A stretch of DNA of 32,146 nt, taken from NCBI RefSeq assembly GCF_001194135.2, contig NC_068988.1, positions 57,508,154-57,540,299 of the forward strand, given 5' to 3'. The notes under the pieces are model-generated. The model searched no databases. It was not told the origin of the DNA and saw only the letters and a list, made by a program, of their open reading frames with translations. Source of the DNA: Octopus bimaculoides. Lineage: Eukaryota. A program made the position numbers and the translations under genes. Below are positions 1 through 32,146 of this stretch, one piece after another; the stretch's first letter is position 1, and every line of letters begins with the position of its first letter.

Positions 1-1
1 G

Positions 2-2413
2 GGCAGGGGTTTTCTTCAAGGTACCAGTTTTATTGTCCACAGCTTTACTAAGCCGTAGCTCGAGTTCTTTGGCAAATAATGCATTTTTCTCACTAGTAGC
101 TGCGCACCTCGGTGCACTCGGAGCTGGCATCTTTTTCGGGCTTTTCACCCTTCGCTTAACAACAACAACATCTTCTGTATTTTCAGATAAGTTTGAACTG
201 TTTGACATAGAATTTGATTGATGTACGGATTCTCGGGACAACGTTGACTTTCGTGACGAAGGGCTGCTCTCATCAATCTCTTCTGCAGATTCTCTAGGTC
301 TGTCCTGGCTTTCATTTCGTACATCTGAAGAGCTAATCATTTCAGATGGAGGCCGGCTGTCCAGAGTTTCGTTGCTAGTACTGCTTGTAGTTGAAGAAAC
401 ACTTACATTACTTTTAGTCGGAGATGGGAAGACACGCACTCGGAACTGGCCCCCAGATGTCTCATCTACGTTGCCATTATCAGGACTTAGAAATTCTGAT
501 TTATTATCATACATGATTGAAGGTACTTCCTTACTTGTGTCATTTGGTTTCACTGCTGTGTTATTATCAAAGCTTTGTTCTGTGCTGCTTTCAGAAGAAG
601 AATCCCGTCCACGACGAAGGAAACTTCGAAACATACTAGCAAATCCTTTCTTCATGCTATTTTCATTCTTTTTTCCTTTATAGCCATCCATACTTTCCAT
701 AGATTCAACATCTTCTCCAACAGCAGATCTTCGACATTGATCTAAGCTTGGCCCTTTCTTGCAACTTCCATCAGAAGATTTAGTACTTGATTTAGAGGGA
801 GAAGCAGAAACACCAGCCACTGGTGATACAGGTGGTTGGGGTGCCTGGCGCTTCCCTTTAGTTTTTGTAAAATCCAAAGTGGCAGCAACAGAAGCCATTT
901 TAGCTTCGAAATCAACTGATTTTGCCTTAGAATATCTCGCTTCATAAGCATCACCTTCTACTCTCAGCATTGTGAAATCATCCCTGTCGTATTTTCTGTC
1001 AAACGTGGTCCCAGCAAAACTTGAGGACATTTCATCTCGTCTACCAATAGTCCCTTCTTTGGTAAGGTGCTGCCGCTTAACTGGAGCCGGCGGCTTCAAA
1101 CCATGTCGTCTCAAAGTGTCAGAATCTCCAATGTCAGTTTTCTCAAAGCAATCCTCTAATCTCCCTTCTACAGAGCGTGACATCATGCACATTACAGACT
1201 GGTTTGACTGTCTGTCATCTTTGTGTCGAGCACTGGGAATTGGTTTCTCTACAGGATCGCTAACACCTTTCTTCAGAGATGCCGGTTTGGGAGCAGGTTT
1301 AGGAAGCGACTCAACAACCCGATAAGGGGAAGAACTCACCTGTTCAATATTATCAGTATCTTTACTCGTTTTTTGATCCATGATATTTTTTGAAGCATTA
1401 TTTTGCATATTCCTACTTTGATACAATGTTGAATTCTCTGAAGCAGATCTTAGACGAAATGTCAAATCTTCGTCAGCATCTTGAATAGTTTCATTGTCAA
1501 AATTCTTTGATGATTTTAAAGGTGAAGTTTTAATTCCGTGACTAAATTCTAAAGAGGGTCGGGAAGACAGTTGAGCTTTAGGAGACTTGTTTCGTCTAGG
1601 GAAAGTTCCAAACTTCTTTGGTAGCAGGTCACAATCTCTTAGACCCTGAAAACGATCAGCTTTCCATAGGAATTCTAATTCAACGTCTTCAAATTCTTTA
1701 CTTGGAACTCTCTTCAGACGACCCTCCAGGGGAGTCTCAACTCTCAAATTATGAGTATCTGAATTCCACAGAGTATTTTCTAAAGCCAAGAGAGCAAACT
1801 GCTTTTCTTCCTCAGTCAGTTGAATACTCCCAGGTGGTGTAATCTCCGCCTCTTCGGGTACATCATCATCATCATCTGGGTATAAATAATCGGAACCACC
1901 GTCGTGGCCAATAATTTCAGGTTCTGATTCAGAAAATATAACTCTAAAAGCCCTATTTTCATCTTTATTTCGAGTTAACTTTAAAACTCCTTTCAATGGA
2001 ATCTCTGACTTTGTCAGGTCAACTTTGGTATTGATAGAATTATCTTTGCTTCCCGACTGCTCACAACTCAGTGGGTTTTCATCTGAAGAATGGGTTGCAA
2101 TTCTTTTAGAAACATTATCGTCAACTACTAAAGGTTTGATACTAAGCAGCTTAATGTTTTCATTAAGATTCTGTTGGTCGTTAGCATTTTTATCAACAAT
2201 TGATGAAACTCTCGGTCCAACTGATAAGTTGCTTTTTATTAGGGATGAGTTCCGTTTTGCAGGAACTGGTGGGGAACCTCTGCCAGCAGAATTCCTTCGG
2301 GGTTTGAGATGGTTACAGGGGGGTTTGATGTGCTCAGACCGGGGACGTAAGCAGTTTGCACACAGGTCTTTACGCCAGGCATTTTGTGAGAACTCTGCAC
2401 ACACTTCTGACAT
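2..2413 (-). CDS. PEAK1: First coding exon (3'-partial, 804 codons, open to the window edge) of a PEAK1/PRAG1-like (NKF3 family) pseudokinase scaffold protein, N-terminal region
   Basis: Manual translation gives no stop from ATG 2413 to position 2: MSEVCAEFSQNAWRKDLCANCLRPRSEH...RGSPPVPAKR...KGVLK...RVIFSESEPEIIGHDGGSDYLYPDDDDD...KKFGTFPRRNKS...SPYRVVE...MFRSFLRRGRD...ALFAKELELRLSK. Five collinear motifs match human PEAK1 as recalled (CNTFTEHVWKPGECKNCFKPKSLH; VILSGSTEVISNEGGRFCYPE; KKWNTIPLRNKS; KPYRVVN; FKSFFRRRKTD). In-frame TGA at 2425-2423. The kinase-like domain would lie outside the window. Confidence 0.85.
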   Translation of the reverse strand, partial: MSEVCAEFSQNAWRKDLCANCLRPRSEHIKPPCNHLKPRRNSAGRGSPPVPAKRNSSLIKSNLSVGPRVSSIVDKNANDQQNLNENIKLLSIKPLVVDDNVSKRIATHSSDENPLSCEQSGSKDNSINTKVDLTKSEIPLKGVLKLTRNKDENRAFRVIFSESEPEIIGHDGGSDYLYPDDDDDVPEEAEITPPGSIQLTEEEKQFALLALENTLWNSDTHNLRVETPLEGRLKRVPSKEFEDVELEFLWKADRFQGLRDCDLLPKKFGTFPRRNKSPKAQLSSRPSLEFSHGIKTSPLKSSKNFDNETIQDADEDLTFRLRSASENSTLYQSRNMQNNASKNIMDQKTSKDTDNIEQVSSSPYRVVESLPKPAPKPASLKKGVSDPVEKPIPSARHKDDRQSNQSVMCMMSRSVEGRLEDCFEKTDIGDSDTLRRHGLKPPAPVKRQHLTKEGTIGRRDEMSSSFAGTTFDRKYDRDDFTMLRVEGDAYEARYSKAKSVDFEAKMASVAATLDFTKTKGKRQAPQPPVSPVAGVSASPSKSSTKSSDGSCKKGPSLDQCRRSAVGEDVESMESMDGYKGKKNENSMKKGFASMFRSFLRRGRDSSSESSTEQSFDNNTAVKPNDTSKEVPSIMYDNKSEFLSPDNGNVDETSGGQFRVRVFPSPTKSNVSVSSTTSSTSNETLDSRPPSEMISSSDVRNESQDRPRESAEEIDESSPSSRKSTLSRESVHQSNSMSNSSNLSENTEDVVVVKRRVKSPKKMPAPSAPRCAATSEKNALFAKELELRLSKAVDNKTGTLKKTPA

Positions 2414-2426
2414 CCTGTTGCATCAT
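2370..2426 (-). other. Out-of-frame upstream ORF overlapping the main start (MMQQDVRSVCRVLTKCLA*)
   Basis: Tandem ATGs at 2426 and 2423, 13 and 10 nt upstream of the main ATG in another frame; TAA at 2372-2370. Confidence 0.6.
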
Positions 2427-2429
2427 GAG

Positions 2430-6482: not shown

Positions 6483-7350
6483 CTAGAACACTATGCATTT
6501 GGTATCCAAGAACAAGAGATAGCTACTAAATACCTGATCATCAAAAGAGATAAGGATGCTCCAAGACCTCCACTGCCATAACAGTGTGCAAGATATCATC
6601 CATATCATCAACAGCTGTCCAGAAATGTCCGCTAAAAATAATACCTTATCATGAGGCATAGGATTATCACTAAATCCGCCCAAAGTGGCAAGCTGGTAGA
6701 ATCAGCTTGCAGGGCAAAATGCTTAGCGGTATTTTGTCTGTCTTTACATTCTTAGTTCAAATGCTGCCGAGGTCAACTTTGCTTTTCATTCTATCAGGGT
6801 TGATGAAATAAGAACTAGCTAAGTACTGGGGTCAATGTAATCAATTAACCCCACTCCCACAAAATTTCAGGCCTTGTGTTTATAACAGAAAGGATTAGCA
6901 CTTAAACCATCCATAATGCTATATCCAGAAACAATTGTCATGACGGCCATAGCAAAAGAACATTAGAACCAGAAAGTTCCAGAAAGTTCTGTCCACACCT
7001 TTAAATAAAAAGAATACTGGCAGAACAAATAAAAACTGCAAATTTGTGTCAGTACAACAGGCCTGATATTGTATGGGACAAGGAGCAAAAGCTGTAGAGA
7101 TCAGTTACCAAGCAAATGTGGCTGTCACTTCAGAAATTGGAGAAAAGGTGACCATTTACAGAGAACTAATGAGAAACCTATTCTCATATCAAGGCTACAA
7201 GTTTTCATTTGCATATATATTACCATTGATACACTGGGTTACATAACAACAAATCTGCATAAAAATCTAGAAGTGGGAGGGTTCTTCAAAACAGAACAGC
7301 ATACACTGATTTGCATTCTCTGAATACAATTGATTAGAAGTACAGTGAAA
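6483..7350 (+). mobile_element. Decayed R4/Dong-group non-LTR retrotransposon 3' fragment (CCHC knuckle plus restriction-like endonuclease), interrupted by a SINE at 6683-6898
   Basis: Broken translation: YAFGIQEQEIATKYL...CHNSVQDIIHIINSCPEMS...RH / NRPDIV-WDKEQKL...EIS...EKVTIYRELMRNL...IDTLGYITTNLHKNLE...STVKICK; multiple stops and frameshifts. Confidence 0.7.
6683..6898 (+). mobile_element. tRNA-derived SINE family B (OK/OR1-like)
   Basis: Box A-like gctggtagaatc, box B-like agttcaaatgc, 3' end tttcaggccttgtgtttataacagaaaggatt. Confidence 0.8.
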
Positions 7351-8522: not shown

Positions 8523-8745
8523 TAAGGTGGCAAAGCTGGCAGAATTGTTAGCAAACTGGTCAAAATGCTTAGCGGCATTTCGTACATCTTTATGTCCTGA
8601 GTTCAAATTCCACCAAGGTCAACTTTGCGTCTTATCCTTTTGGGGGTCAATAAATTAAGTACCAGTGAAACACTGGGCTCAATGTAATTGACTAGTTCCC
8701 TCCCCCTATATTTCAGGCCTTGTGCCTTTAATAGAAAGGATTATA
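8523..8745 (+). mobile_element. SINE family B
   Basis: aaggtggcaaagctggcagaattgttagc...gagttcaaattcc...aggccttgtgcctttaatagaaaggatt. Confidence 0.85.
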
Positions 8746-8992: not shown

Positions 8993-9209
8993 TAATCCTT
9001 TTTTACTAAAGGCACAAGGCCTGAAATTTGCAGGGAGGGGACTAGTGGATTACATCAATCCCAGTGTTTCACTGGTACTTAATTTATCGACTCCGAAAGG
9101 AAAAAAAACAAAGTCAACCTTTGCGGAATTTGAACTCAGTTCGTAACGACAGACGAAATACCACTAAGCATTTCATGTCGCATGCTAGCGATTCTACCAG
9201 CTCACCACC

Positions 9210-9834: not shown

Positions 9835-9993
9835 TGAAATTTTGGAACAAGGCCAGCAAATTTTGGTGGGGATGTGGTAAGATGATTACATCGACCCCTG
9901 TGCTGAATTGGTACTTATTTTATTGACCCCGAAAGGATGAAAATCAAAGTTGAGGTTGGCAGTATTTGAACTCAGAAAATAAAGGCAGATGAA
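9835..9993 (-). mobile_element. SINE family B, partial
   Basis: gtacttattttattgaccccgaaaggatgaaaatcaaagttgagg...tttgaactcagaa. Confidence 0.7.
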
Positions 9994-10007
9994 TATAATA
10001 ATAATAA

Positions 10008-10227
10008 TAATCCTTTCTACTAAAAGCACAAGCTCTGAAATTTTGTAGGAGGGGACTAGTTAATTATATCAATCCCAGTGTTTCACTGGTACTTAATTTA
10101 TCAACCCCGAAAGGATGAAGGGCAAAGTCAACCTTGGCAAAATTTGAACTCCAAATGTGGTGGTAGGTGAAATACCACTAAGCATTTTGACTGGCATGCT
10201 AACGATTTTTGCCATCTCACTGCCTTG
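10008..10227 (-). mobile_element. SINE family B
   Basis: Full-length reverse-complement copy flanked by (AAT)n. Confidence 0.85.
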
Positions 10228-10538: not shown

Positions 10539-10910
10539 NNNNNNNNNNNNNNNNNNNNNNNNNNNNNNNNNNNNNNNNNNNNNNNNNNNNNNNNNNNNNN
10601 NNNNNNNNNNNNNNNNNNNNNNNNNNNNNNNNNNNNNNNNNNNNNNNNNNNNNNNNNNNNNNNNNNNNNNNNNNNNNNNNNNNNNNNNNNNNNNNNNNNN
10701 NNNNNNNNNNNNNNNNNNNNNNNNNNNNNNNNNNNNNNNNNNNNNNNNNNNNNNNNNNNNNNNNNNNNNNNNNNNNNNNNNNNNNNNNNNNNNNNNNNNN
10801 NNNNNNNNNNNNNNNNNNNNNNNNNNNNNNNNNNNNNNNNNNNNNNNNNNNNNNNNNNNNNNNNNNNNNNNNNNNNNNNNNNNNNNNNNNNNNNNNNNNN
10901 NNNNNNNNNN
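10539..10910. other. Assembly gap (others: 17619-17739, 19439-19769, 20975-20984, 24928-25541, 27985-28350)
   Basis: N runs. Confidence 1.
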
Positions 10911-12572
10911 GTGGCAGTAGTAGTAGTAGTAGTAAAATCCTTCTTTTGGTGAAGGTAGAAAAAGGGTTTACATCATTTACTTTTGTGGGAGTTCAGGAAC
11001 AGTGGAAGAAAAGGAGGAGGAGGGGGGTGGAGGAGGAGGAGGAGGAGGAGCTGTTGAAAAGCAAAGAATATCAAACTTTCTCAAAGCCTCACCCAACAGT
11101 TGTCTTTCATCATGATGAAAGTTACTATGCTTATTATTATTATTACTATTATTATTATTGTTGTTGTTATTGTTATCATCGAACATTATTATTGCTATAT
11201 TATTGTACATTATTGTTGTTATTATTACACCAATATCTATTCATCTGCCTATTGAATCATTTATAAAAGGCAAAATGAGAAATTATATACCATCTGGAGA
11301 GAGAAGAAAAAAAATATATTTGATTACAAAATGCATATGAATGTATGTGCATGCATGTATTTATATATGTTTATGCATGCATTTATATGTGTGTGTGTGT
11401 GTGAGTGTGTATGCATTTATACACACGTTTGTATGTATTTGTGCATGTGTATATGTGTACGCACACATACACACACACACACACATCTGTCGGTTATAAA
11501 GAAAGGAAAAAAAAAAAACACATAAATAACATCATAGTATTTCCTGTCTGGTTTTTCTTGTCTGAAGGAACTGACTTTCACCTCCAGGAAACTCCAGAGG
11601 AACAAGCCAACAGATCATCCAAAACACACACACGCACGAATACATCTCAATACACAATAAACTGATTGTTTAATGTGTTGTACCACTATACTACTATCTA
11701 AATATCTTTATCAAGATAATAGTACAACCTACCATTATCTAGATATGTTTATCTTGATAGTAGGTGTCATAAGATTCCACCCAGCCACTATCTCCTATTC
11801 CAGCTCTCAACTTAAACCCTTAAAAACCACTCCACTTCCTTGTCTGTTTACTAAACAAGTGAGATAAGATGCTGTTTGGGATGCTGTGATTCCTGTGATT
11901 AGGAATCAAAACTAGAATCCCAGCCAGCAATGAAGTCTCCAGTGTTCATTCAAGATTTAGTTCATAATAAATGTTACAAAAGTTACCTTGACATTTAGTA
12001 GTTTCTTGTTCTTTTTCTAGTTTCAAGCACTGGACGACTGCCATACTGGGGCACCACCTTTAAAAGTTTTTAATCAGTTAATCATATTGACTCCAGTACT
12101 TATTTCACACTGGTATTTATTTTATTGATCTCTGATTATTAACTGACTTAGCATATTTGTTTGGCATTATAAGACATACTATTTTTTTTTTAAAAAGATG
12201 TTGCAAAAACAAAACAAAAATTGCAAAATCATTTTGGGTCCTCTATGTGAAGTTAGGCCTCCCATGAGCTTTAATGCACAAAAAAACTTAACTTGTTTTC
12301 TTGGCTGCATACTGCTGAAACTGGGGTGTATCTAACATGTCCATGCAGCCCTTACAGCTTTTATACCATCAAATATGCTAGTTACTATTTTGACATGAAG
12401 TAAAATAACTCAACACAAAGGTAAACACTCACACACACATTCAAAATGGATGCATGAATTTTTCCACTTCTTAAAGAAGGACTTTGTAATGTCAGAGATT
12501 TCCATTCCCTTCACTTTTATAGTACTATTCTATACGCATATAAACACACACACACACACACACACATTGTGG

Positions 12573-17569: not shown

Positions 17570-17618
<49 letters not shown>

Positions 17619-17912
17619 NNNNNNNNNNNNNNNNNNNNNNNNNNNNNNNNNNNNNNNNNNNNNNNNNNNNNNNNNNNNNNNNNNNNNNNNNNNNNNNNNN
17701 NNNNNNNNNNNNNNNNNNNNNNNNNNNNNNNNNNNNNNNTATATACACACATACATATATACGGTGGGCTTCTTTTAGTTTCCGTCTACCAAATCCACAT
17801 CCACTCACAGGGCTTTGGTTGGCCTGAGGCTATTGTAGAAGACACTTGCCCAAGGTGCCAAGCAGTGGGACTGAACCCAGAACCAAGTTACTTATCACAC
17901 AGCCACTCCATC
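17348..17912 (-). mobile_element. SINE family A, near full-length with an expanded (TA)n centre spanning an assembly gap
   Basis: Clear 3' half at 17348-17560 and 5' half at 17760-17912. Confidence 0.9.
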
Positions 17913-19250: not shown

Positions 19251-21423
19251 AAATGATCACCTTCTTTCTCTGTCTCCCTTCATTTCATTATGAAGCCTAC
19301 TTTGAAGAAGACAATGGACACTTGAGATGTGTGTCTGTGTGTGTGTGTGTGTATAAAACTTGAGAAAGAGGGGTAAAGAGAGGACGTATAGGAGATAAAG
19401 ACTGGTATAAGGGCTCTTGGTTATATAGGATGAGAAGCNNNNNNNNNNNNNNNNNNNNNNNNNNNNNNNNNNNNNNNNNNNNNNNNNNNNNNNNNNNNNN
19501 NNNNNNNNNNNNNNNNNNNNNNNNNNNNNNNNNNNNNNNNNNNNNNNNNNNNNNNNNNNNNNNNNNNNNNNNNNNNNNNNNNNNNNNNNNNNNNNNNNNN
19601 NNNNNNNNNNNNNNNNNNNNNNNNNNNNNNNNNNNNNNNNNNNNNNNNNNNNNNNNNNNNNNNNNNNNNNNNNNNNNNNNNNNNNNNNNNNNNNNNNNNN
19701 NNNNNNNNNNNNNNNNNNNNNNNNNNNNNNNNNNNNNNNNNNNNNNNNNNNNNNNNNNNNNNNNNNNNNTTTTGCCGTGTTAATTTCATCATCATCATCA
19801 TATAGTGTCAGTTTTCCATGCTGGTATGGTCTAGACCAGTGGTTCCCAAACTATGAGTCGCGACCCACTGATGGGTCGCAAACGGAATCCTAGTGGGTTG
19901 CAAAAAGTTATAACATTACGCATTAGCTTTGATTAACTGCTGTCTATCGAGATAGTTCAAGACTCATGTTTTAAATACTAGACTGGTTGTTTTATCATTG
20001 AACCTGATGTTAATTCTATTATTGAGTGCAGCAAGAAACAGGCTCATCCTTTTCACAGGCCTCAATGATAAAGTAATCTGAAATAAATTTGCTTCTTTCA
20101 TTAATGTTTTTACCCAGTAGAGTTAAGTGGGTCACCATAAACTGGTGTCATAAATAGTGGGTTGCATCTCTAAATGATCACCTTCTTTCTCTGTCTCCCT
20201 TCATTTCATTATTAACCCCCCCACACCACTGAAGCCTACTTTGAAGAAGACAATGGACACTTAAGATGTGTGTGTGTGTGTGTGTGTGTGTATAAAACTT
20301 GAGAAAGAGGGGTAAAGAGAGGACGTATAGGAGATAAAGACTGGTATAAGGGCTCTTGGTTATATAGGATGAGAAGCAAGTGGTCTGGGTGGGGGGGGGG
20401 TTATTTTATCTTTGTTTACACTTGACCAACATTGAAAATAGTTGATTTTGCTTTGTGTTTGCTACAGTTACAGCAAAAAGTGTCATGTGCAGAAGAAGGT
20501 CAAAGAATTTGTGGGAAGGATGAGAGAGGTCACCTGTCAGAAGTTTGGAGGTTTTTTGAGGAAAAAACCAGGGTGAACAGTATTGGTGAAACTGATGAAA
20601 CCAGGGTGAACTGATGCTGCAAAATCCCTACCATTTTGCCGTGTTAATTTCATCATCATCATCATATAGTGTCAGTTTTCCATGCTGGTATGGTCTAGAC
20701 CAGTGGTTCCCAAACTATGAGTCGCGACCCACTGATGGGTCGCAAACGGAATCCTAGTGGGTTGCAAAAAGTTATAACATTACGCATTAGCTTTGATTAA
20801 CTGCTGTCTATCGAGATAGTTCAAGACTCATGTTTTAAATACTAGACTGGTTGTTTTATCATTGAACCTGATGTTAATTCTATTATCGAGTGCAGCAAGA
20901 AACAGGCTCATCCTTTTCACAGGCCTCAATGATAAAGTAATCTGAAATAAATTTGCTTCTTTCATTAATGTTTTNNNNNNNNNNACCAGGGTGAACTGAT
21001 GCTGCAAAATCCCTACCATTTTGCCGTGTTAATTTCATCATCATCATCATATAGTGTCAGTTTTCCATGCTGGTATGGTCTAGACCAGTGGTTCCCAAAC
21101 TATGAGTCGCGACCCACTGATGGGTCGCAAACGGAATCCTAGTGGGTTGCAAAAAGTTATAACATTACGCATTAGCTTTGATTAACTGCTGTCTATCGAG
21201 ATAGTTCAAGACTCATGTTTTAAATACTAGACTGGTTGTTTTATCATTGAACCTGATGTTAATTCTATTATCGAGTGCAGCAAGAAACAGGCTCATCCTT
21301 TTCACAGGCCTCAATGATAAAGTAATCTGAAATAAATTTGCTTCTTTCATTAATGTTTTTACCCAGTAGAGTTAAGTGGGTCACCATAAACTGGTGTCAT
21401 AAATAGTGGGTTGCATCTCTAAA
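19251..21423. repeat. Local tandem duplication of a ~0.9-kb unit, plus a 375-bp exact duplicate across a 10-N gap
   Basis: 19251-19438 matches 20172-20377 (18-bp indel, SNPs); 19770-20174 matches the MITE-bearing block; 20600-20974 equals 20985-21359. Confidence 0.9.
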
Positions 21424-24927: not shown

Positions 24928-25569
24928 NNNNNNNNNNNNNNNNNNNNNNNNNNNNNNNNNNNNNNNNNNNNNNNNNNNNNNNNNNNNNNNNNNNNNNNNN
25001 NNNNNNNNNNNNNNNNNNNNNNNNNNNNNNNNNNNNNNNNNNNNNNNNNNNNNNNNNNNNNNNNNNNNNNNNNNNNNNNNNNNNNNNNNNNNNNNNNNNN
25101 NNNNNNNNNNNNNNNNNNNNNNNNNNNNNNNNNNNNNNNNNNNNNNNNNNNNNNNNNNNNNNNNNNNNNNNNNNNNNNNNNNNNNNNNNNNNNNNNNNNN
25201 NNNNNNNNNNNNNNNNNNNNNNNNNNNNNNNNNNNNNNNNNNNNNNNNNNNNNNNNNNNNNNNNNNNNNNNNNNNNNNNNNNNNNNNNNNNNNNNNNNNN
25301 NNNNNNNNNNNNNNNNNNNNNNNNNNNNNNNNNNNNNNNNNNNNNNNNNNNNNNNNNNNNNNNNNNNNNNNNNNNNNNNNNNNNNNNNNNNNNNNNNNNN
25401 NNNNNNNNNNNNNNNNNNNNNNNNNNNNNNNNNNNNNNNNNNNNNNNNNNNNNNNNNNNNNNNNNNNNNNNNNNNNNNNNNNNNNNNNNNNNNNNNNNNN
25501 NNNNNNNNNNNNNNNNNNNNNNNNNNNNNNNNNNNNNNNNNCCTAGTGGACTATCTTAATGCAAAATAA

Positions 25570-27934: not shown

Positions 27935-27973
<39 letters not shown>

Positions 27974-28350
27974 GGCAGCAGGCANNNNNNNNNNNNNNNN
28001 NNNNNNNNNNNNNNNNNNNNNNNNNNNNNNNNNNNNNNNNNNNNNNNNNNNNNNNNNNNNNNNNNNNNNNNNNNNNNNNNNNNNNNNNNNNNNNNNNNNN
28101 NNNNNNNNNNNNNNNNNNNNNNNNNNNNNNNNNNNNNNNNNNNNNNNNNNNNNNNNNNNNNNNNNNNNNNNNNNNNNNNNNNNNNNNNNNNNNNNNNNNN
28201 NNNNNNNNNNNNNNNNNNNNNNNNNNNNNNNNNNNNNNNNNNNNNNNNNNNNNNNNNNNNNNNNNNNNNNNNNNNNNNNNNNNNNNNNNNNNNNNNNNNN
28301 NNNNNNNNNNNNNNNNNNNNNNNNNNNNNNNNNNNNNNNNNNNNNNNNNN

Positions 28351-28622
28351 ATATATATTTGTAAGTCCTGGTGTTTTTGTTATGTATTTGTCTGAATATT
28401 TTTTTATTATACCTAAGGCACCTACTATGATAGGAATTGTTTCTGTTTTTAGATTCCACATTCGAGTTACCTCTATTTCCAGGTCTTTGTATTTTGAAAG
28501 TTTTTCCATTTCTTTTAGAGAAACGTTGTCATCTGCTGGTATTGATACATCAATTAGAAAGCATTTTTTTTCTTCATGATCTTTGACAACTATATCTGGT
28601 CTATTTGCCTTAATTTCTCTTA

Positions 28623-28623
<1 letters not shown>
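28351..28623 (-). mobile_element. 5'-truncated R4/Dong LINE, RLE domain with intact frame, adjoining (AAT)n
   Basis: IREIKANRPDIVVKDHEEKKCFLIDVSIPADDNVSLKEMEKLSKYKDLEIEVTRMWNLKTETIPIIVGALGIIKKYSDKYITKTPGLTNIY (PD..D..K nuclease motif), no stops. Confidence 0.9.
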
Positions 28624-28662
<39 letters not shown>

Positions 28663-28664
<2 letters not shown>

Positions 28665-28790
28665 GGCAGCAGGCAAAATGCTTAGCGACATTTCGTCCAT
28701 CTTTATATTCTGAGTTCAAATTCCGCTGGGATCAATTTTGCTGAAATTTCAAGCCTTGTGCCTATATTAGAAAGGATTATTTATTATTAT
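28663..28790 (+). mobile_element. SINE family B with two internal deletions
   Basis: aaggcagc|aggcaaaatgcttagc...gagttcaaattccgctggg...caagccttgtgcctatattagaaaggatt. Confidence 0.75.
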
Positions 28791-28801
28791 TATTATCATT
28801 A

Positions 28802-29071
28802 TAAAGAATAAAAAGTTTAGAATGGCACAACAATGCACTATAAAACAAAAAATGGACTATATACCTGTTGTAATTTGGTTATCTATAGTCTGATGATATT
28901 TCGGAATTACAATTCCTTCTTCAGATCTTTAGACTCCATCTAAGAATATCTGAAGAAGGAATTGTATTCCGAAATATCATCGGACTATAGATAACCAAAT
29001 TACAACAGGTATATAGTCCATTTTTTGTTTTATAGTGCATTGTTGTACCATTCTAAACTTTTTATTCTTTA
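28802..29071. mobile_element. Penelope-like element (PLE)-type inverted repeat: 270-bp near-perfect palindrome
   Basis: Arms of about 125 bp differ by 2 substitutions and 1 indel; each arm carries CTGAAGA-stem-GAAA; similar sequence may extend to about 29113. Confidence 0.65.
28887..28935 (-). ncRNA. Minimal type I hammerhead ribozyme motif
   Basis: 5'-AGUCU AAA GAU CUGAAGA A GGAAU UGUA AUUCC GAAA UA UC^AUC AGACU-3': stem I GAU/AUC plus AGUCU/AGACU, 5-bp stem II, palindromic AUAU in place of stem III. Confidence 0.6.
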
Positions 29072-30199
29072 CAAACAATACACAATGCTTCAAGCAAACT
29101 ACAATACTCTCCTATTATTATTATTATTATTATTATTTGTTTTCCTTCATGTGATGTGTTATTATGAATAATTTGCTAAGGAATTGTTTTAGAACTTAAA
29201 AGCCAAACCTGTTTATAAATTAGATTTCTGTCGCGAATATAATTATTTTCAATTGTTATTGAGAGGTTTTGAATAGATCTTAAGGAAATTATTGAAAACC
29301 TCAAGTTGTTGTTTATATTGTTTGGCTCCAATTCAACCCTGATCATACAGACTTATGACCAAAAGGAATTCCAGCCAGAATCAACTTTAATCCCACTTGC
29401 TGACATCAGGCTTTGGGTCAACTAAAGCCTTGTAAAATTCCTTAGATGAAACCCACTGGAGGGACTGGCATTCCTCTTCATGAGTGGTAAATTAAACATG
29501 TTACCCAGTTTAACATCACTACCTGATTCTTAGGTACATTTCATTCTCTTACAAGAACGGGCAGGTCTCTAATCCAAGAATAACACCATTCTGTTCATCC
29601 ACCAGTTACAGAGGCCCTGAAAAGAAAAAGGTCACTGGTGCTGCCCTTCTTCCTCTGAACTAACATATATGAGTTTAAGTTTTTGTCTAAAGTAGGATGA
29701 TTGAGAGATGCCAAATATTTAAATGTAGACTGGTGCTGGGTTAATTATACTTATAAGTAGGTACATTTGGGTACAGGGATGACCTCCAGGAAATAACTGA
29801 GATACATAGTCCAAGCTTTAAAACTTTACCTGTTAGAAGGCACTGGATTTGTACGAGTTGCAAAAGAACAACAACCTCTGCAACAGAGAACCAATGGGAG
29901 AATCTAATTTGCGAGAAATAGCAGCCAAATCACTCTCAAATCCCACTATATAAGAAAGGATACACTTATCAGAGTAATTCCTGATATATGAAAAAAATGA
30001 GGATGGTTATAATTGGAATGAATTTTATCATTGGTCAACTAGATCAGGGATGATTTAGAGATAAATAGCAATAAAAGCAATCTCCTAGAAATAGCAACCA
30101 AATCTACAATTTATATCTTACTCTCTTTGAAACATGGGAAGATTGGAATGACTTTAATCATAAGTTTGCCTAATCAGTCGTGACCTAAGGTTAAACAGT

Positions 30200-30411
30200 A
30201 ACAAGCTGGCAAAATTGTAAGCATGCCGGACAAAATGCTGCTAAGAATTTTGTCTGTCTTTTATGTTCTGAGTTCAAATTCTGTCAAGGTCAACTTTGCC
30301 TTTCATCCTTTTGGGGTCGATAAAATAAGCACCAGCTTAGCACTGGGATCAATGTAATCAACTAGCCCCTCCCCTAAAATTTCAGGCCTTCTGCCTAGAG
30401 TAGAAAGGATA
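30200..30411 (+). mobile_element. SINE family B
   Basis: aagctggcaaaattgtaagcatgccggac...gagttcaaattctg...tttcaggccttctgcctagagtagaaaggat. Confidence 0.85.
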
Positions 30412-30504
30412 CCTTTATTATTTTAGTGGCCATTGTAAAAGGAAAAAGTTTCAAATCACATGAAACATAAAAACAGACAACAAAAAAAAACAGTTTTACA
30501 TTAC

Positions 30505-30560
30505 CCATGAGATTAGGAGACATTGATGCTTACCTGGAAAGAAGAAAAGAAAAGAAAAAT
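30505..30560 (-). promoter_or_regulatory. Candidate recursive splice site (ratchet point) with a 29-nt cryptic exon
   Basis: Minus strand: tttttcttttcttttcttctttccAG|GTAAGCatcaatgtctcctaatctcatgg|GTAATGT. Confidence 0.55.
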
Positions 30561-30929
30561 TATAAATCATACTGATTAAAAGTTATTATATTTATAAATG
30601 GTTACTAATTAACACACTGTTAATTTCAACAAAGAAACAACAAGAAAAAGTTACAAAATTCAAGACAAACTGAAAAAACATCATTACAAACTACACAGTT
30701 TGATGTATTTTGTCATTCATGGTTTATTCATTACTACTGTTAAGGCTATGATTCACTGATGAGGTCAGCATAAAATTAAAACTAATAAAAAGTTGTCTCC
30801 TTTCTTTCTCACTGCATTTTTATTTATTTATTCTATAATGACTGAGAGAATTTATCTAGAGATCTCATCTTCATACATACATTTATTAACCTAAATGCCA
30901 ACACAATGAGTACTCGCTATTTACTTAAA

Positions 30930-31430
30930 TGTTCTATCTAGCACCGTTGAGAGTGCATAAGTCTACTACTGCCAATTTTATGCCTATTAAACATTACACC
31001 TGCAGCAAGGGCTGATGCAATATAGCAGGGACAGACACATCCTTAGTCACGGCAGATAGCACTTGGAGAAATCACCAGCTCATTTACTATTACATCTCCA
31101 AAAGATCCCATCCTTGATAAACTAGGTATAAAGGACCTATTAGAGTATCTCCCTAAAACTCTCTACCAAACTGCATAATGGCACAGAAACATCAACACCT
31201 TCCAGCTGCCCCTATAAACTAACATGGAGGCAGCTCTTATACATACATACCCAACAGTTTTCTCTGCCACTAATACCTAAGTCCTCAATAATCTAGGAAT
31301 GATACTCGAGGGAATTCTACTCTATAAAACTTTCTGCATACCAGGTTGTCCTCTTCAGAATAGAACAGATATGAATCCTGAACCCACAGGACTTTTAGTG
31401 TTACTATGAGTCCCATGAAAACTAACCACT
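30930..31430 (-). mobile_element. Heavily decayed L1/Tx1-like RT fragment
   Basis: Scattered remnants in the expected order: KSP..., RIPSSI, IVN...*GC/LSLLY/PLL, TYA; many frameshifts. Confidence 0.4.
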
Positions 31431-31799
31431 CTTTCCGGTGTCAATCTTAACATGTTGACCTTTGACTATTATAAATAATTGTTGGCACAAAGTGAAGGAA
31501 CCCTTAAGTCAAAATCAATATAGAATAAGGAAGACTATTTTAAAAGTTTCTGCTGTTTATTGCAGGAAGCTAACCTACACAGTCTGGTTTCTAAAAATAT
31601 GGCTTTGTGTTCTTTCTACATTTTCCCCTGATAATGCATCAATTCAATTCATTTACAATATCAGTTTGCTTGTAGAAACAGAGTGCTCTGGTAGGAGTTA
31701 GGTTTGTAATTTCTGGGTGTATATGTTAGGTACGTGAAGAAGAGGACAGTTTGAACAACTAAGCAATGTTAGCACTGAGAAGATATCTGCATGTATATA

Positions 31800-31885
31800 T
31801 TCTTTTATTTGTTTCAGTCATTTGACTGCAGCCATGCTGGAGCACCACCTTTACATATATATGCATATATATACATACATACATA

Positions 31886-31916
<31 letters not shown>

Positions 31917-31935
31917 GAGCGCGCGTGCATGAATA
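31800..31935 (-). mobile_element. SINE family A 3' end followed by a (TA)/(CA) microsatellite
   Basis: ttttatttgtttcagtcatttgactgcagccatgctggagcaccacc. Confidence 0.7.
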
Positions 31936-32146
31936 TGTACATAGACATAGCCTTGTCACACTTTGCGTTGTGTTGATTCAGGCTAAGGATTACATTTATG
32001 GATACAAGTTTCTGTGGAGTATTCAGCCATTTGACTGTAATAATAGATACTTTCCATTGATATAATAACAGAAACACTCATCATCACAACCACTGGAAAT
32101 TCTATCATCATCATCATCACCAAAACCACCACCACCACCACCACCA

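Follow-up and report, generated by a model that had tools for sequence, protein, structure and literature searches.

A candidate recursive splice site in the long 5′-UTR intron of a PEAK-family gene of Octopus bimaculoides

Does a splice acceptor that runs directly into a splice donor, tens of kilobases upstream of an octopus coding exon, act as a recursive splice site (ratchet point)? Insects and vertebrates are known to splice recursively; a search of full-text literature found no paper linking the process to octopus or molluscs, and a broader one that took in cephalopods and squid had no paper on it among the results listed. Cephalopods are protostomes, yet their genomes are of vertebrate size and their neural and signalling genes have very long introns; the octopus genome is intron-rich and neural-gene-rich. 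The arrangement in question lies on the minus strand of a 32,146-nt stretch of O. bimaculoides DNA (the window), the low-coordinate end of which holds the first coding exon of a PEAK-like gene.

Direct reading of the minus strand gives the recursive-splice-site candidate as ...ataatttttcttttcttttcttctttccag|gtaagcatcaatgtctcctaatctcatgg|gtaatgtaaaac..., and its parts are as follows.

30562–30566, minus strand: candidate branch point TTTAT, with its A at 30563, −29 from the AG
A at 30576, minus strand: second branch-point candidate TTAAT, −42 from the AG
30536–30559, minus strand: polypyrimidine tract of 24 uninterrupted pyrimidines, including the C of CAG
30534–30535, minus strand: acceptor AG of the candidate ratchet point (recursive 3′ splice site; CAG is 30536–30534)
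30528–30533, minus strand: GTAAGC, candidate regenerated 5′ splice site, directly abutting the AG
30505–30533, minus strand: putative cryptic RS-exon of 29 nt (GTAAGCATCAATGTCTCCTAATCTCATGG)
30498–30504, minus strand: second donor GTAATGT, preceded by TGG, with its GT at 30504–30503

In TTTCCAG|GTAAGC (30540–30528, minus strand) a 3′ splice site and a 5′ splice site stand at zero distance. The 20-mer scored before the AG consists entirely of pyrimidines (20/20), and positions −6 to −1 of the candidate acceptor read TTCCAG, which places TT at −5/−6. Both branch-point candidates were assigned from sequence only; the branch-point consensus is yUnAy, and the TTTAT candidate matches it. Transcript sequence from 30533 begins GTAAGCATCAATG, and the ATG inside the 29-nt putative RS-exon is out of frame with the main ATG of the gene. 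An earlier note on this DNA had proposed an acceptor followed at once by GTAAGC and by a further donor 29 nt on, and every one of its coordinates is correct. Its description of the second donor as strong was overstated: TGG|GTAATG matches MAG|GTRAGT at 5/9 positions and has no G at +5, and is best called weak to moderate. Joining the upstream exon A (see below) to 30533 would give AAG|GTAAGC, with 8/9 consensus positions, so that the second donor is the weaker of the two; these strengths are consensus match counts, with no trained model behind them.

The identity of the host gene was taken from matches to PDB sequences, because a Pfam search of the gene product, O. vulgaris ortholog included, gave no match.

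1–2429, minus strand: LOC106883491 (PEAK-like gene), first coding exon, with its acceptor AG at 2431–2430 and its ATG at 2413–2411; the ORF exits the start of the window

The encoded protein is that of O. bimaculoides LOC106883491. Its O. vulgaris ortholog (P0007; 1575 aa) has an N-terminus that closely matches the exon in the window and a C-terminus that matches the structures of PEAK1 (6bhc, E = 8.6e-8), PRAG1 (6ewx, 2.7e-7) and SgK223 (5ve6, 1e-3), which bears out the label “PEAK-like” that the gene had been given from the window alone; the PEAK-type pseudokinase/SHED region itself is encoded outside the window. The O. bimaculoides annotation has two adjacent “uncharacterized” genes here, LOC106883491 (841–860 aa) and LOC106883493 (720 aa), and O. 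vulgaris and another species have one protein of 1575–1614 aa with a PEAK-type C-terminus. The O. bimaculoides gene has probably been split in two by mis-annotation.

RNA contigs from several runs, and raw reads, leave the coding exon at 2429/2431 and pass into one or the other of two upstream exons. Exon A, found in runs X1, X13 and X50, has the 3′ end ...GTTATGAAGTTAAG (also given as ...AGGACCTCTTCATTATCTGTTATGAAGTTAAG and ...TCTGTTATGAAGTTAAG) and finishes in ...GTTAAG; exon B, found in runs X8 and X49, has the 3′ end ...CACATATACCTAT (also given as ...GAATGGATATATATATACACATATACCTAT) and finishes in ...CCTAT. This suggests alternative promoters or tissue-specific 5′ exons. Neither exon is in the window when searched for by its last 30 nt (≤3 mismatches), by longest exact match or by suffix plus GT. 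A 20-nt match of exon B at 17590–17571 was rejected as a chance (AT)n/(AC)n similarity that breaks down at the junction. We also considered that the candidate might be the donor of an alternative first exon ending ...TTTCCAG and rejected this on the basis of the observed ends of exons A and B.

Because exons A and B are absent from the window, the intron would be at least 29.7 kb long and extend to 32146 or beyond, unless one of the six N gaps conceals an exon. That the transcription unit extends beyond the site had been a supposition of the earlier note; it is upheld by the use of the coding-exon acceptor, which is joined to exons absent from the window, and the unit very probably runs past 30534. 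The candidate thus probably lies on the sense strand, within a 5′-UTR intron that measures 29.7 kb or more. RNA contigs of low depth occur here and there to either side of 30534, consistent with pre-mRNA spanning it, and no exon with RNA support lies between the site and the coding exon, in agreement with the earlier note. The 28.1 kb previously given for the distance from the site to the acceptor agrees with our figure (30533 to AG 2431–2430), which can only be approximate since 1,814 N, and blocks duplicated exactly at the gap edges, are counted in it. Among the other cephalopod loci, L001 and L002 come from a relative as unspliced contigs, L003–L007 are too diverged for intron alignment, L008 (O. 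bimaculoides v2) ends at window position 12413 and L009 (O. vulgaris) reaches window position 8721; none of L001–L009 extends 28 kb upstream, so the orthologous site and 5′ exon are not reached.

We propose that the arrangement is an intronic recursive splice site in the long 5′-UTR intron of this PEAK-family gene, and give this reading a probability of about 0.45. During transcription of the intron, of at least 30 kb, U2AF and U2 would recognise the 24-nt tract, the AG at 30535–30534 and a branch point ~29–42 nt upstream, and exon definition could be helped by U1 at GTAAGC and/or at the weaker GTAATG 29 nt downstream. Exon A or B of the 5′ UTR would then be ligated to 30533, which would remove the first part of the intron and recreate the strong donor AAG|GTAAGC. 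The regenerated donor would outcompete the weak downstream one, and the remaining ~28 kb would be spliced to 2431–2430, leaving no trace in the mRNA. Skipping of the RS-exon is predicted from the greater strength of the reconstituted 5′ splice site, and, as the site is in a 5′-UTR intron, an included exon would bring in an upstream ATG instead of a premature stop codon. The motif, its rarity, its intronic sense-strand context, the lack of structure and the constraint among congeners are observed, and each RNA-level step of this route is inferred. A weak point of the proposal is that a 29-nt exon would be short for exon definition and that its donor is weak, both of which favour a chance motif.

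In fly ratchet points the acceptor abuts the donor and follows a very prominent pyrimidine tract, the motif is sharply conserved and the host intron is long, and 196/197 of them (99.5%) have TT at −5/−6 (bioRxiv 10.1101/006163); those with cryptic RS-exons, which are typically ~50 nt long and have a donor weaker than the regenerated one, include sites in Ubx, kuz, Bx and luna (Duff et al. 2015; Joseph et al. 2018/2021; Pai et al. 2018). The octopus candidate has all of the sequence-level features of these sites. It reads YnTTNCAG|GTAAG, with an extreme tract and TT at −5/−6; its downstream segment of 28 kb falls inside the fly range of 2.6–63.6 kb; and it is placed similarly to the Bx ratchet point of Drosophila, which lies in a ~31-kb intron of a longer isoform. 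As in flies, the cryptic exon is short and out of frame and its donor is weaker than the regenerated donor, although its length of 29 nt is below the ~50 nt seen there, and the motif is sharply conserved, here only across congeners ~4–6% diverged. There are two further differences: fly ratchet points have sawtooth, junction and lariat evidence whereas the octopus candidate is known from sequence alone, and the octopus genome, unlike that of the fly, is vertebrate-sized and repeat-rich, which makes chance motifs far more numerous.

Recursive splice sites with RS-exons are also found in long vertebrate genes (Sibley et al. 2015; Zhang et al. 2018; Blazquez et al. 2018). The octopus candidate resembles these in having AGGT, a strong 3′ splice site, a long intron, a distance of >2 kb from annotated splice sites and conservation, and in a reconstituted 5′ splice site that beats the 5′ splice site of the RS-exon. 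Among human AGGT sites that are conserved, lie in long introns and have a strong 3′ splice site, 60% are supported by junction reads in a search of 70 billion reads, and the introns of candidate recursive sites have a median length of 32.9 kb (PMC6110456). The octopus intron (at least 29.7 kb) is near that value, whereas the host introns of human sawtooth-type sites have a median of 329 kb; the human candidates are defined by junction reads and the octopus candidate by sequence. In human nascent RNA, junction reads were found for 342/36,870 putative sites and a sawtooth for only 16 (PMC6110456), figures that favour a chance motif. Calibrated against the human data, a site of this kind is quite likely to be touched by the spliceosome; that it serves as a major pathway is much less certain.

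A chance motif is what we rank as the main rival of the recursive site. It would consist of a low-complexity polypurine/polypyrimidine tract, perhaps a decayed retroposon tail, that ends in CAG and is followed by GTAAG; the site would be inert or a source of splicing noise, and the invariance of its core would reflect a fluctuation or a locally low mutation rate. We regard this as a substantial possibility, if on balance a doubtful one. AGGTRAG occurs three times on the plus strand of the window and twice on the minus strand, and the candidate is the only occurrence with a pyrimidine-rich upstream 20-mer (20/20 vs 7–9/20 for the others). Upstream 20-mers with ≥18/20 pyrimidines are found at 1.47% of minus-strand positions and those with 20/20 at 0.37%, and the chance expectation per sense strand of the window is ~0.03 sites (≥18/20) or 0.007 (20/20). 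Some 40 AGGTRAG sites in ~183 kb of homologous cephalopod loci, on either strand, include none with >14/20 pyrimidines, and across the ~430 kb of strand sequence that was scanned no other AGGTRAG has a strong tract. No RS-like motif with ≥15/20 pyrimidines was present in the 10-kb upstream flanks or gene bodies of the homologs, and a comparable motif is absent from the 73-kb O. vulgaris gene body; this lack of a second example counts against the recursive site. Such a motif is uncommon without being extraordinarily rare: by the same arithmetic (~0.03 per 30 kb per strand) several thousand copies are expected by chance in a 2.7-Gb genome. Against a chance origin, every position that is constrained in ratchet points is perfect here, TT at −5/−6 included.

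A further argument against a chance motif, and for the recursive site, comes from single-copy orthologous contigs of four congeners (species B–E), ~4–6% diverged, that span the site. The earlier note had named conservation of YnCAG|GTAAG in other Octopus as a mark of a genuine site, and the motif is indeed kept in all four, a result that extends over ~4–6% divergence only. The acceptor AG, GTAAGC and the second donor are invariant in 4/4 congeners, and the pyrimidine tract, by nature prone to slippage, carries no substitution or indel in any of them, unlike the adjacent A/T runs, which do carry indels. In a control region (30850–31300), 38/451 positions (8.4%) are variable when species B, C and D are compared with the window (4.4–6.4% per species), and the immediate flanks of the site (30450–30490 and 30572–30640) are normal in this respect, with 8/110 variable positions (7.3%) plus five indel variants. 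Between these flanks, 30491–30571 shows zero changes in B, C and D. Species E has a single core change at 30508 (plus-strand T>C), a silent-position change inside the 29-nt exon. For the 63-nt core this amounts to 0 variable positions in B, C and D vs 4.7 expected from control rates by base context (CpG, other G/C, A/T), with P = 0.009, and none of 389 sliding 63-nt control windows has one or fewer changes. In C and D the mismatch totals per contig cover all listed differences; B has one further mismatch that is not listed and E has two, probably close to where the aligned stretch ends.

Two features of the same alignments support the view that the motif is accidental. Substitution counts in the control windows are over-dispersed (2–14 per 63 nt), and a broader stretch of ~370 nt (30446–30811), which takes in the candidate and sequence upstream of it, is less diverged in species C, with 2.5% mismatches vs 6.4% in the control and 5–6% in the next 950 nt. 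Overall, the comparison argues with moderate strength for constraint that would be centred on the splice-signal block, across a shallow divergence (~4–6%). Within the broader stretch, 30742–30811 matches many paralogous contigs in all four species.

The sequence surrounding the site bears on both readings, owing to a repeat on the downstream side.

30229–30445, plus strand: high-copy SINE-like repeat, directly downstream of the candidate in the sense of the gene (from word depth and repeat families)

The SINE extends over about 30179–30445 by read depth and 30229–30382 by repeat match, and starts ~60–90 nt downstream of the candidate site. The earlier statement that the site is in unique, non-repeat sequence therefore holds for the core, which is single-copy, and fails for its surroundings, given this SINE and a tract that is of low complexity and draws paralogous contig matches. 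Antisense retroposon tails are known to create cryptic 3′ splice sites and pseudoexons, as in Alu-type exonisation. The octopus site resembles such cases in its long low-complexity pyrimidine tract beside a SINE and in an acceptor that is strong but possibly accidental, and it is possible that a classic source of accidental 3′ splice sites is what we see here, as the chance-motif explanation would have it. It differs from them in that the tract lies outside the high-copy signal, which ends near 30445, in that the core is single-copy and invariant, and in the presence of a consensus donor at zero distance from the AG. The tract could be a decayed retroposon tail.

Word depth over the SINE-like repeats at 30179–30445 and 31781–31850 is up to ~1e5 (RNA and DNA), and further members of repeat families D6, D9 and D10 are found at 6712, 8558, 27539 and 28671 (plus strand). 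Inverted SINE-like copies are present at 9025 and 9869. When reads are mapped, these repeats give rise to many spurious “joints” between copies; joints from 29931 or 30559 in run X15 were considered as deletion alleles and rejected, as repeat or low-complexity segments are being connected.

The RNA runs of O. bimaculoides are of poly(A) type and essentially without intronic reads, which leaves them almost no power to detect recursive splicing; in earlier work, billions of total or nascent RNA reads were needed to detect recursive intermediates. Raw reads are wholly absent from unique intron sequence, and depth along the contigs is uniform by construction. Within these limits, the fraction of sampled 31-mers of 30446–30640 present in the species' RNA runs was 0.00, three raw runs (each sampled at ~6%) gave zero reads on 30495–30536, where RNA-contig depth is also zero, and neither a junction from an upstream exon to 30533 nor a loose end at 30533 resembling exon A or B was seen. 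This lack of RNA evidence of use counts for a chance motif, with the little weight that runs of this type allow. Use of the site in splicing is neither shown nor refuted by these data, and the site is best described as a good but unproven candidate.

A further explanation is that of an ordinary alternative or “poison” 5′-UTR cassette exon, rarely included and carrying an out-of-frame upstream ATG. Such an exon would extend either 29 nt to GG|GTAATG or ~122 nt to AAG|GTATCC near 30412; GTAAGC would be incidental, or the exon would be an expressed RS-exon, and inclusion would take place in unsampled tissues or stages. In favour of a cassette exon, neither splice site of the 29-nt unit varies in the four species, two or more alternative 5′ exons are already in use in the gene, and expressed RS-exons are known in flies and mammals. 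However, no sampled 31-mer of 30446–30640 is in any RNA run of the species, the 29-nt exon is in 0 of ~11 junction reads and 0/3 contigs at the coding exon (2429), and GTAAG directly after the AG would need a separate coincidence. We consider a cassette exon improbable.

It is similarly improbable that the constraint is unrelated to splicing of the host gene (for example, a regulatory element), or that a mis-oriented contig or a site outside the transcription unit makes the motif antisense or intergenic. The assembly does allow some room for this. The window has six N runs (10539–10910, 17619–17739, 19439–19769, 20975–20984, 24928–25541 and 27985–28350). Three 300-nt blocks that are 100% identical (19770, 20634 and 21019) and a 148-nt pair that is 99% identical (19291 and 20230) flank assembly gaps, and these duplicated blocks within 19291–21359 look like gap-edge duplication artefacts. 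The contig piece that carries the site (28351–32146) is oriented by scaffolding alone, across an N gap, and the chromosome-level v2 record of O. bimaculoides retains the same contigs and gaps and thereby inherits this orientation. A 5′ exon could also sit in an N gap, as the 5′ exons were not located in the window. This uncertainty tells against the recursive site as well. Abutting one of the gaps is a minus-strand ORF fragment (27970–28719; ...RPDIVVKDHEEKKCFLIDVSIPADDNVSLKEMEKLSKYKDLEIEVTRMWNLKTETIPIIVGALG...), which looks like the C-terminal part of a retrotransposon protein.

Several observations at the site count against this explanation. Although the broader stretch 30446–30811 is somewhat conserved, as a non-splicing element might be, the invariant island 30491–30571 coincides with the splice-signal block and not with the wider region, and the low-depth RNA contigs on either side speak against a site outside the transcription unit. 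No Rfam family or tRNA was found in the window, and no stable fold or hairpin on either strand around the site: shuffled sequence folds better than the sense strand (z = +1.65), and the antisense strand does not stand out in the same comparison. This makes a structured RNA unlikely and is in keeping with a splice signal on an accessible single strand.

If the recursive site is real, it would be the first reported in a mollusc. The wider claim, that recursive splicing is actively maintained in the long introns of cephalopods, with this site as the first one identified among molluscs and lophotrochozoans, is one that we put forward tentatively, and we would sooner bet against it than for it. Were it true, ratchet-point splicing with cryptic RS-exons would be ancestral to bilaterians and not confined to flies and vertebrates, and the fly-type signature (extreme tract, TT at −5/−6, GTAAG) could be used to map sites across the octopus genome. 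Ratchet points in cephalopods bear both on the age of the mechanism and on the accurate processing of long introns, and one confirmed site would be a positive control for genome-wide scans. An unused site would instead be a warning that a motif with shallow conservation is insufficient in large, repeat-rich genomes.

A confirmed site would also offer a handle, through mutation of GTAAGC, on whether recursive splicing guards the transcript from a cryptic exon with an upstream ATG. The coding exon has upstream ATGs of its own: two out-of-frame ATGs (2426 and 2423, minus strand) lie just inside it, and an 18-codon upstream ORF (window 2426–2370) overlaps the main ATG at 2413 and stops at TAA. A distant octopod (L003, ~9990–10060) has the same upstream-ATG arrangement.
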